A stretch of 64,000 nucleotides of DNA, taken from NCBI GenBank assembly GCA_039096225.1, contig JBBPEB010000023.1:496001-560000 (forward strand), written 5' to 3'. Below are positions 39,001 to 53,121 of this stretch, piece after piece. Below the pieces are notes generated by a model. The model was not told the DNA's origin, ran no database searches, and saw only the letters and a list, made by a program, of their open reading frames with translations. This DNA comes from Blastocystis sp. Blastoise. Lineage: Eukaryota; Protista; Bigyra: Opalinata. The stretch's first letter is position 1; the number at the start of each line of letters is the position of its first letter. The position numbers and the translations under genes are program-made.

Positions 39001-42191
<3,191 letters not shown>

Positions 42192-43037
42192 TATAACGCT
42201 TCTTTAATGAGAACTCTTGCTATAATCTTCAAAGAATAATAATTATCTTTTTATTTCAAAGATTATTTTTTCCCCGTGATTTAACAAAAAAAGACTTTTT
42301 ATTTTAATTCTTCATTCATTTTTTATACACTTAACCATCCTCGTTTAAAATGCATTTAAAAAGAGCTTCTCTTTCCAAATTCTATTAAACAATCATAGAG
42401 TTTCTTTAATTAAAAAATATATATTTGAAATCTCCCTAAAACTTAATGTTCTTCTCTTTAAAGTTATTCGTAAATATAACTCGTATAATAAAACATTGAA
42501 ATAATAAAAATAATAACTTTATGTCAAAATAACATCGACACAAACAAGCTACAAAAGCAATAAATGTTCATATTGAGATCTATATACTTTTAATACTTTT
42601 TCTAATGATATTTATGATCTCTAGATTTATATAAAAGAGATAAACATCAAAAGAAACAGTATTGAATGAAACAGAGAATACAAAAATCAAAAAAACAAAT
42701 AAAATATCAAAATATTCGTGAATAAATAGAAAGGTGTTATATTTTACAATTGACCCTAATTAAAAAAATTTATACTATGAATAAACAAAATAAAATGATA
42801 GAATAAGAACCATAAAAATTAATTGGGTAATAATAAGAATGTACAGTCATTTGTAATTTCATGATTTATATGTCTTTTTTAAATATAAAAATATAGCAAA
42901 ATAAACAGAATAATCACGGGAGCTACGCTGTTTTTGTCGGGTAAATTATTCAAAGAATTATTACATTTATCAAAGCCACTCTTTCTTTGGTTATATTTTC
43001 AATAATTTGCAACCTCCATCCCTTATTTTAGAATAAT

Positions 43038-44105
43038 ATGGCTAAATACAGGTATTTATAAACAATATATTTCATTTCAGATTTAGTGAATATCATTATA
43101 TTATTTTGTTTTTTTTGTTAATGTCCATTTGATTCATAACATTAGCTGTTGTTTCTCTATTTTATGTCATTTAACACATGTCTAAAGCTTTCTAATTATT
43201 CAAATATATACAGTGCTACTCCCGTAGATACCAAAAAGAGTAATTTATTCAAAACTTCATAAAAACATATTTATCTATTTTTATTTTAGGTTGTATGGCT
43301 CGTGGTTCTTACCTTCGTGTTCACTACAAACCTTGCCAAGCTGTAGCTAAGGCTATTATGGGCAAGAGTCTTCTTGATGCTAAGAAGTACTTACAAGATG
43401 TTATTGCTCACAAATCCGCTGTTGCTTTCACTCAACACAACGGTGGTATTGGTCGTCATGCTCAAGGTAAGAACCTTAAGTCTGGTAGCCAATGTGCTTG
43501 GCCCGAAAAGGCTTGCCGTTTCTTCCTTGTCCTTCTCGACAACCTCCAAGCTAACGGTGAAGCTAAGGAATTAGATGCTGCTAAGCTCTACATTTCTCAC
43601 TCTCAAGCTAACCATGCTCCTTGTGGTCACAGACGTACTTACCGTGCTCACGGTCGTATTGGACCTATGTTTTGTTTATTTATTATATTCTTTGATTTCT
43701 TTTATATATATTTATATTTATATTTATATTTATTAAATTCTAATACTATAATAATTATTAATTATATATATAATAAATTGATTATTCATTAAATAATATA
43801 TTATTAGAAGAATAAGAGATAATATATAACTATTTTCTTCTCTATACCTTACCTTAGTCATCCTGCTCATATTGAAGTTATTGCTTCTGAAAAGGCTGAA
43901 ACTGTTGCTCGTTCTAAGACTGAACATATATTATTATATTATATCATACTATCATTTTTGTTTTTTTTTTAAATAAGTTGTTTAAAAATAATATATAATA
44001 TATTATTATTTCTATATTTTATTCATATCTGAACCTGTTCTTCGTCGTTTCACCAAGAAACAAATTGCTTCTAAACGTCTTCACTTAGGTGGTGGTCTCA
44101 ATTAA
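43038..44105 (+). CDS. RPL17: 60S ribosomal protein L17 (uL22), 5 exons; introns 3 and 4 non-canonical
   Basis: MAKYS...ARGSYLRVHYK...GGIGRHAQGK...WPEK...RRTYRAHGRIGP|YLSHPAHIEVI...FTKKQIASKRLHLGGGLN*; C-ending codon bias typical of a highly expressed gene. Confidence 0.97.
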
Positions 44106-44401
44106 AGAGAGTAACTAGTTAAGTAATAAACGGATAATAATTTGGTTGCTATATGTGTTTTGTGTATCATTTTTTTTTAAATCACAGATCAATAACAAGT
44201 CGTTTGTATTATATATGTATTATATATCAATATTTATCAATATATACATATATATATTATCTTACATGAAAACAAAATGAAACACTAAAATATTGATATG
44301 ACTCGAAGACAAAGAAAATAGTATTAACAATGAATATATAGGATAATAGTACAAGAATAATTATAATGAACAGAGAAAACAATTTAGAATAATATTTCCA
44401 G

Positions 44402-51426: not shown

Positions 51427-53121
51427 TTTTTATATTATCATAAGTATTTGTTTATTTGAATATATATATAATAATTATTCTTTCTCTCTAGTCTACATCT
51501 CTGATTCCCGCGGTTATTCTCTCTCCATCTATACTAGATATGTCTATACTAGATCCAACGCCTGTTCCTTATTCATTAAATTATATAAATACATGGATTG
51601 AAATACCTCCTTTAGGTATATATACTATTAATCTTAATGAATATCACCAACAAATGTTTCATATACAATTATTACCATGGAAATCTACATATATACGTAA
51701 TAAATTATCTGATTATACAAATATTCCAGATTCTTTTCTATTTCCTGATTTCCCGCCAAATCTTGTGGATTCTGCCCACCAGCTTCAACATGCACTTGAA
51801 AATAGTATTTCAAAACGACTTTTTTATACATCAACTAAAGAGAAAGGGTAAGAATACTACTATATATATTTATATATTATTTGTTTAAATATGTCTTTTT
51901 TTAATATTATTAATAATAATATTCTTATATATATATATATATAGAATATCAATATTATTCTCTGGAGGAATAGATTGTTCACTTATTACTGCTATAACAT
52001 CCACGTTACTTCCCCGTGATTATTTTATTGAATTATTAAATATTTCATTTGATAATCCTTTTTATAATTCACCAGATAGAAGAACGGCATTAAATTCTTA
52101 TATTGATTTGATGGCAGCAGATCCTTCCCGCGAATATCGATTCATTTGTGTCGATGTTTCTATTCCTGAATTAATCGAAGAAGAACAACATATTCTTCAA
52201 CTTATTCATGTATATATTTTTATATTTATTATTAGTATTATTATTATTATTATTATTATAGCCTAAAACATCTACAATGGATTTCCATATTGGTGCAGCT
52301 TTTCACTTTGCTTCCCGCGGGAATGGAAAGATCATTGAAAAAGGGAATCATACAATTGATGTATATATATATATATAAAGAATATTAATAATATGTTATT
52401 TCTGTTATTTATATATATATATATATCTTTAGGAAATGAAAGAATTAGTTGGTTATAAGATTGAGCTAAATAATGTATATATAAATATATATATTGGTTA
52501 TTATTATTATATATATAGGAAGATAATGCAGGTAACAATTCAAAATGATTCTAAATATTTTACTATTATTTTACTATATCTATATATATATATATTTATA
52601 CGTTATAGAAACAATTCCTGAGCCTGGATATATACATATATTAAAAGATTATAAAGCGACATGTAAATTAATTCTTTCAGGAACAGGAGCAGATGAATTA
52701 TATGGAGGTATATATATATGTATATATTATTATTATATTATATTATTTATAACTATTATTAATAAGTTAATTTTATTATTATTCTATATAGGATATACTC
52801 GTCATTATGCTTTATATAATAAGGAGGGATGGAAAGCATTAGAGAATACATTAGAAATGGAATATAATCGATTATGGATACGAAACCTTGGATATATTCA
52901 TGGTTATTATAATTATATTTATTATTATTATAATTATTATTACATATTATAAAAATCATGCTTCTTATTACTTATTATACTTATTATACCTATTATTACT
53001 TATTATACTTATTATATATAGGGTAGAGATGATAGATGTATATCTTCAAATGGAAAAGAAATTCGATTTCCATTTTTAGATGAAGATATTGTTCAATTAA
53101 CTTATTCATTACCCATCTATC

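Follow-up and report, generated by a model that had tools for sequence, protein, structure and literature searches.

The window analyzed here is a 64,000-nucleotide stretch of the genome of Blastocystis sp. 'Blastoise', a tortoise isolate, and has a GC content of ~21%. The genome assembly that we examined comprises 33.3 Mb in 34 contigs. The RPL17/uL22 gene lies at 43038-44105 on the plus strand of the window and has five exons. Exon 1 (43038..43051; ATG GCT AAA TAC AG) is followed by a GT-AG intron of 162 nt (intron 1, 43052..43213), with the 6-nt repeat ATACAG at the exon end and again at the intron end. Exon 2 (43214..43239), placed from the sequence and RNA contigs, is followed by a second GT-AG intron, of 50 nt (intron 2, 43240..43289). 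Exon 3 (43290..43664) carries the uL22 core (Pfam PF00237 in homologs) and ends with GRIG and the first base of a Pro codon; its translation matches an NCBI protein of Blastocystis sp. 'Blastoise' at 100% identity. Intron 3 (43665..43847) is 183 nt long and has CT..AC ends and a GC content of 10%, versus 45% in the exons. Exon 4 (43848..43921; YLSHPAHIEVIASEKAETVARSKT), intron 4 (43922..44030; 109 nt), and exon 5 (44031..44105; EPVLRRFTKKQIASKRLHLGGGLN) follow, and the coding region ends with a TAA stop at 44103-44105. The 3' untranslated region (UTR) extends from 44106 to the poly(A) addition site at 44149. As the original prediction had held, the translated exons follow the uL22 homologs column by column through GRIG, the split Pro codon, and YLSHPAHIE, which is YMSSPCHIE in the homologs.

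Exon 3 ends with ATT GGA C at 43664, intron 3 reads CTATG...CTATAC, and the frame resumes with CT TAC CTT AGT CAT from 43848. The terminal bases of intron 3 are those of one nanopore-plus-Illumina assembly. In both the sequence and the RNA joint, the plus-strand repeat ACCT is found at the upstream border (43663..43666) and at the downstream border (43846..43849). Because ACCT is present at both borders, five registers of the intron, from 43663-43845 to 43667-43849, give identical mRNA, and none of the five is GT-AG, GC-AG, or AT-AC. The exact register of the cut is one that we infer. The insert in the uL22 motif was just as originally claimed, and so was the consequence of retaining it, since read-through meets a TAA stop at 43790-43792. 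The read-through open reading frame (43295-43789) was not on record in the public assemblies in which it was looked up. Removal of intron 3 is needed for the conserved uL22 frame and gives GRIGPYLSHPAHIE from the mRNA.

Toward the 3' end of intron 3 (43825..43843, plus strand), a candidate branch site, TATAAC, with its A at 43829 and lying 18 nt from the cut site, precedes the pyrimidine run TTTTCTTCTCT, and the donor core TATGT is present at +2 to +6, where a second copy of the gene has the donor GTATGT. As sequence matches, these would amount to a U2-type donor core, branch site, and pyrimidine tract, although the ends are CT..AC and not the GT/GC...AG of U2-type introns. A canonical alternative on the plus strand runs in frame from the GT at 43669-70 to the AG at 43856-57 (43669..43857), with a good pyrimidine tract, and the second copy keeps it. 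It is the junction used in NCBI model KAK8798798.1 and, as had been foreseen, it costs YLS, giving the product GPIHPAH. The good TTAG acceptor located 10 nt downstream of the AC site is ignored, and thus something specific must mark the AC site.

To look at splicing of this gene, we aligned RNA contigs to window positions 42950-44250 and obtained four joints. The RNA sources, from two studies, were X1, a poly(A) metatranscriptome dated 2025, and X2, a run of 'organism A' dated 2023; X2 is RNA because one of its contigs ends in 26 A's after 44149. Introns 1 and 2 were represented in X1 by the joints 43045>43208, which is GT..AG after a 6-nt shift, and 43239>43290. For intron 3, the X2 joint 43662>43846 skips 183 bases and is CT..AC after a 2-nt shift, with 4 ambiguous bases. 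This is the skip that the original prediction had expected in RNA across the junction. In X1, a contig with a depth of 2384 joins the final 12 nt of exon 3 directly to 43846-43908, with 0 mismatches. Four sites in 43846-43908 differ between the window copy and its paralog, and the X1 junction contig matches the window copy at all of them. Because the first 31-mer of this contig spans both the junction and a copy-specific base, it is the window copy itself that is spliced CT..AC. For intron 4, the X1 joint 43919>44029 (two contigs, depth 7742) skips 109 bases, with CT..AT ends and 6 ambiguous bases, and X2 contains loose ends matching this joint. RNA contig depth within introns 3 and 4 was zero. 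The canonical 43669-43857 joint was absent among the contig joints listed (contigs can drop rare isoforms).

These data confirm that intron 3 of RPL17 is real and is exactly excised from poly(A) RNA, with CT..AC ends as assembled. Among the ways in which the original prediction said that it could fail were an mRNA reading GPIHPAH and a locus that is an unexpressed duplicate. We found the CT..AC form in the RNA contigs instead, and copy-specific single nucleotide polymorphisms (SNPs) are present in high-depth spliced poly(A) contigs at both the intron 3 and intron 4 junctions. The window copy of RPL17 is expressed. At the protein level, the two readings of intron 3 would be distinguished by the peptides IGPYLSHPAHIEVIASEK and IGPIHPAHIEVIASEK.

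A second RPL17 copy is found on contig C29 (locus L002, G000:C29:1058883-1062254, minus strand). The original prediction had raised such a copy. It does exist, but it too is expressed, with its 3' UTR among the loose ends of X1, and its intron 3 likewise requires an acceptor other than AG. The exons of this paralog are 98-100% identical to those of the window copy, with differences that are almost all synonymous, and its four introns are all at the window-copy positions, with interiors that are saturated and cannot be aligned. Its intron 3 reads GGAC/GTATGT...TATAC/CTTACC, that is, GT..AC (slashes mark the cuts), and its intron 4 reads ACT/GTATTT...TATCT/GAG. Thus, the AC acceptor of intron 3 and the CT acceptor of intron 4 are identical at the two loci. 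A CTT/CTC difference between the paralogs is synonymous only under the CT..AC reading. In a GC-rich relative (Logan contig L003), whose protein is 78% identical, the introns at the same RPL17 positions are canonical. Intron 3 of the relative (GGAC/GTACGT...CCCTAG/CC) interrupts the same phase-1 Pro codon as in the window copy and the paralog, and intron 4 reads AAGACC/GTATGT...CCGTAG/GAG. Because the paralog has GT..AC and the relative has GT..AG at the same position, intron 3 is old and spliceosomal by descent. Comparison of these sequences suggests that the acceptor changed from AG to AC before the two paralogs or in both of them and that the donor changed from GT to CT in the window copy only.

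The NCBI models of the two paralogs (KAK8798798.1 and KAK8810676.1, 162 and 184 aa) force GT-AG and lose YLS, and they lose in addition one residue or the last 23 C-terminal residues. In the uL22 alignment the GT-AG models show a 2-residue gap, whereas the exon translations of the CT..AC form are collinear. Gene models forced to GT-AG are thus wrong for both RPL17 copies, and other models in the three tortoise isolates may suffer too.

Intron 4 has the repeat CTGAAC on both sides, with registers from 43920-44028 (CT..AT) to 43926-44034 (AT..AC). In the register homologous to the paralog and the relative, its ends are GA..CT, and the window copy has almost no donor consensus (GAACAT). The AT-AC reading of intron 4 (register +4) was not favored: the paralog cannot share this register, and U12 motifs are absent. 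Intron 4 is canonical on neither strand, and this bears on the one part of the original prediction that did not survive, the proposal that the CT..AC insert behaves as an opposite-strand GT-AG intron. On the plus strand, the paralog retains GTATGT and the pyrimidine tract is at the 3' end; the product is sense mRNA with poly(A) at ~44149. CT-AC junctions are usually discarded as wrong-strand artefacts; the RPL17 case is real and on the sense strand.

We compared intron 3 with known intron classes. The U12-type donor [AG]TATCCTT is absent (the intron 3 donor is CTATGTTTT / CTATGTTT, and that of the paralog is GTATGTTTT), and the U12 branch site TCCTTAAC, which is expected 8-20 nt upstream of the 3' end, is absent from 43800-43847. 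A textbook U12-type AT-AC intron is present elsewhere in the window, at 40405-40519 on the minus strand (ATATCCTTAT...TTCCTTAAT, 8 nt, AC); as a control, this intron reads ATATCCTT...TTCCTTAAT...AC. The genome also contains a U12 snRNA candidate (G000:C24:844725-844868) with a standard branch-binding box, AUGAGUAAGGAAA. The U1 5' end (AUACUUACCU) and U5 loop I (GCCUUUUAC) are standard, and Slu7 is encoded in the genome. Of the Euglena-type features, no CAG/CTG motif, end-to-end pairing, or terminal inverted repeat was found in intron 3. Structure-guided excision was rejected, with a fold z of +0.85 and pairings that are only internal and AT-rich. Intron 3 shares with introners a border-overlapping direct repeat (ACCT, 43663-43666 and 43846-43849), and it has no 8-20 nt terminal inverted repeat and cannot be aligned even with the paralog's intron.

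Similar borders were found in introns of other genes. In a sample consisting of RPL17, RPS3A, RPL15, RPL4, RPL3, and an ASNSD1-like gene, the two final bases of the upstream exon recur at every non-AG acceptor (7/7), and the two initial bases of the downstream exon recur at every non-GT donor (4/4). We refer to this pattern as the exon echo. For the donors, with a floor of 1/16 on each term, the joint probability is at most 1.5e-5. The junctions outside RPL17 are predictions based on reading frame, conserved N-termini, and Pfam coordinates, and RNA support is for RPL17 only. In RPS3A (L024, G000:C19:568150-569400), intron 1 is GT..TG with a 10-nt repeat, TGTTGGTAAG; intron 2 is GG..AG, with the GG of the intron start equal to the GG that starts the next exon; and intron 3 looks non-canonical, as either TT..AG or GT..GC. 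Intron 1 of RPL15 (L027/L028) is GT..CG with the 7-nt echo AATATCG, and intron 3 is GT..AA in one copy and GA..AA in its near-identical duplicate, in which the donor has been rewritten to a copy of the next exon start. Intron 1 of RPL4 (L031) is GT..TG with the 2-nt echo TG, and intron 1 of RPL3 is GT..AA with the 3-nt echo AAA in both of two old paralogs (L022 and L023). The ASNSD1-like intron lies in the window at 52890-53021 and is GG..AG, again with a GG start equal to that of the next exon. Many introns of the same genes are plain GT-AG introns without a repeat, and no echo was found in three introns of the GC-rich relative. Echo-type non-canonical introns are common in the highly expressed genes of this genome. 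These cases point to a stramenopile lineage that regularly breaks GT-AG in the introns of many highly expressed genes.

Two genes of the window gave further observations on this pattern. In the ASNSD1-like gene, the exon after the intron starts with GRDDR and matches positions 225-255 of the Asn_synthase profile. A TRAPPC12-like gene has a possible GT..TG intron (39943-39995, minus strand) with a 3' end that copies 7 nt of the upstream exon; if it is added, the acceptor count becomes 8/8, for which the joint probability, on the same floor of 1/16 per term, is at most 1.4e-9.

The two RPL15 loci (L027, G000:C33:1213545-1214475, and L028, C2:26805-27713, minus strand) arose by recent duplication, and their introns are nearly identical. 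Differences are found in the acceptor of intron 2, which is TTCAAG versus TTATAG, and in the donor of intron 3, which is TATGTTG versus ATGCTG. Both differences lengthen the junction repeat, and the donor difference in the C2 copy is an indel plus a substitution. As read through the end of the Pfam domain, RPL3 (L022, L023) and RPL4 (L031) have no intron within the domain and one directly after the ATG. cDNA-mediated intron loss would be expected to leave just such a 5'-only intron. Reverse-transcriptase domains were found at 21 places in the assembly, e.g., C23:75618-76424 and C15:488522-489331. At least 18 of these domains are in open frames of >1,100 aa without stops, and 13 of the frames are of 2,400-2,800 aa. 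Such long open reverse-transcriptase frames suggest recently active retroelements.

How could an intron with these ends be removed, and how would the echo arise? We consider it likely, taking the whole explanation together, that intron 3 is a genuine and efficiently removed U2-derived intron that lost its terminal G's, that is still handled by the major spliceosome, and whose echo has an mRNA-templated origin. For the removal itself, the major spliceosome with relaxed terminal recognition is the probable agent. Intron 3 would descend from a U2-type GT-AG intron at the same codon position, with the loss of both terminal G's. The spliceosome could still read TATGT at +2 to +6, TATAAC, the pyrimidine tract, and the contrast between 10% and 45% GC, and the catalytic steps in this lineage would tolerate non-G terminal bases. 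In model systems, the second splicing step is blocked by a C at either +1 or -1, and therefore an unexplained relaxation would be required here. A covariation of the first and last intron nucleotides, G1-G(last) versus A1-C(last), was reportedly described by Parker and Siliciano in 1993. Intron 3 is like this case in that both terminal bases are changed and the last is C, but it differs in that the compatible pair is A...C, whereas the window copy has C...C and the paralog has G...C. C...C and G...C terminal pairs are not known to support the second splicing step.

The most economical origin of the echo would be repeated repair of the gene with its own spliced mRNA or cDNA as template, in tracts that overran the exon edge by a few bases. 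Several observations are consistent with such conversion. The RPL17 paralogs have homogenized exons but saturated introns, and the young RPL15 duplicates differ at intron ends in ways that lengthen the junction repeat. The many reverse-transcriptase frames and the post-ATG-only introns of RPL3 and RPL4 would fit a genome where cDNA recombination is active. Conversion would still need tolerance of any terminal base by the spliceosome, and it would leave the marking of the AC site unexplained. With every dinucleotide tolerated, point mutation should also have made some termini lacking an echo; among the 12 non-canonical termini there is none, which favors either a functional role of the repeat or very frequent conversion. 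The two-sided echo may be fitted either by spliceosome tolerance with mRNA-templated conversion or by repeat-guided cutting.

Guidance by the repeat is an unlikely but substantive alternative. Here, the direct repeat across the cut sites (ACCT at intron 3, CTGAAC at intron 4, and up to 10 nt elsewhere) would itself be the signal for excision, the cuts being placed by identity to the opposite exon end. A guide that pairs with the mature junction, for example, or non-U2 machinery could do this. The echo at all 12 non-canonical termini and on both intron sides speaks for it, as do the AC and CT acceptors, which are conserved in the old RPL17 paralogs despite saturated interiors, the nearby AG that is ignored, and the donor of intron 4 in the window copy, which nearly lacks a consensus. 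Short direct repeats also flank the non-conventional introns of euglenids and Amoebophrya (PMC12621601, PMC7789003). However, there is no known guide RNA or mechanism, and the intron position, the pyrimidine tract, and the GTATGT donor of the paralog are ordinary spliceosomal features. End-to-end pairing and the Euglena CAG/CTG code are both lacking in intron 3, and many introns of the same genes are GT-AG without a repeat. A related proposal, which we regard as doubtful, although a shade less so than guidance, is a second splice-site rule by which a cut is accepted if at least two adjoining bases repeat the exon end across the intron, giving the same reading at the 5', 3', and spliced junctions. 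If it were true, the repeat would be read by the splicing machinery or a junction-specific guide and would be more than a scar of mRNA-templated repair. The echo might instead have been made during assembly, had a true GT..AG been overwritten at the bases beside the exon edges when spliced, RNA-derived short reads with mismatched overhangs were used for polishing. One or two substitutions at the junction itself would suffice for most echoes, and the effect is strongest in very highly expressed genes, both of which such polishing would explain. We nevertheless think an artefact quite improbable. The assembly was made from nanopore reads; correction used racon, PolyPolish (three rounds, Illumina DNA), and POLCA (one 'short-read' round). 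The PolyPolish input is thus named as DNA, polishers keep DNA-supported bases, and RNA overhangs would have to swamp the DNA coverage. RNA-only polishing would affect most introns, yet most are GT-AG. The echo is also found in ASNSD1, which is presumably weakly expressed, the donor of the C2 copy of RPL15 involves an indel as well as a substitution, and the AC and CT acceptors are shared by the two separate RPL17 loci.

The remaining explanations concern intron 3 alone. If the main mRNA used the canonical GT 43669 to AG 43857 junction, the CT..AC form would be a minor product or a template-switch artefact of reverse transcriptase between the ACCT repeats. That pair is in frame, with a good pyrimidine tract, and conserved in the paralog, and template switching typically occurs at short direct repeats. 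However, CT..AC is the only form in the junction contigs of X1 and X2, and the non-canonical product restores the conserved PY[LM]S and makes the CTT/CTC difference synonymous. Nor does intron 3 look like a product of template switching, given zero intron depth, a high-depth junction contig, and two studies. There is very little chance that this reading is right. That the window copy is a decaying, unexpressed duplicate with mutated splice sites would account for the loss of GT from its introns 3 and 4 when the paralog keeps it; this explanation is refuted by the copy-specific SNPs in spliced poly(A) contigs, and the exon differences from the paralog are almost all synonymous. A U12-type intron with unusual termini, removed by the minor spliceosome, is likewise very improbable. 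Minor introns tolerate varied terminal dinucleotides, the same genome has a U12 snRNA and the same window an AT-AC intron (40405-40519, minus strand), and minor introns number in the hundreds in human Blastocystis subtype 1 (PMC5608401, PMC10639083). However, the donor and branch motifs are absent, and the orthologous intron of the relative is GTACGT...TAG.

In human Blastocystis subtype 1, 98.3% of introns are GT-AG and ~1% are U12-type (PMC5608401). For tortoise isolates, long introns and low GC have been reported, in a paper that does not mention non-canonical splice sites (PMC10690189). The U12-type AT-AC introns of subtype 1 (PMC5608401, PMC10639083) are similar to the RPL17 case as a second non-GT-AG class in the genus, and their machinery is present here, but the donor and branch motifs that define them are absent from RPL17 introns 3 and 4. 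As far as the accounts of Fritillaria borealis extend (Henriet et al. 2019, via PMC7789003 and PMC12621601; bioRxiv 10.1101/2025.08.15.670264), its non-GT-AG introns are accurately removed with standard-looking snRNAs, and the tolerance is thought to lie in spliceosomal recognition of the terminal dinucleotides, which would be alike here. The same accounts describe most Fritillaria introns as non-canonical, with AG-A(N) preferred and an origin by transposon insertion thought likely. In contrast, the introns described here are old, are at the positions of the relative's GT-AG introns, have no preferred dinucleotide, and show the exon echo.

The introns of Amoebophrya (PMC7789003) also have many terminal dinucleotides and 3-5 nt direct repeats that overlap the borders. 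They differ in having 8-20 nt inverted repeats that form hairpins and in belonging to repeated 'introner' families, whereas RPL17 intron 3 has no terminal inverted repeat or significant fold and is at an ancestral intron position. The non-conventional introns of euglenids and hemistasiid diplonemids (PMC12501133, PMC12621601) are similar in being non-GT-AG, with repeat-ambiguous borders and conventional introns alongside. They differ in the base pairing that joins their ends (5'-N3CDG...CH'GN5-6 in Euglena) and in being probably spliceosome-free; RPL17 intron 3 has no such pairing and is probably removed by the spliceosome. The introns that we describe form a non-canonical class for which this stramenopile lineage has no earlier description, and the rule that they follow is simple and testable. 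RPL17 ranks among the cell's most highly expressed and most conserved genes, and both terminal G's of its intron must be dispensable. The exon echo offers a direct test of RNA-templated gene repair at exon edges or of a new way of choosing cut sites.

An RPL4 copy on C33 was considered as an intron-bearing paralog of the intronless C4 copy and was rejected, as it is not a close paralog. Cytosolic HSP70 (G000:C25, two loci on C16, C4, and C8) and actin (two genes at C29:218631-222224) are multi-copy and have no intron within the Pfam domain, and the organellar or divergent members of the HSP70 and actin families are split into many exons.
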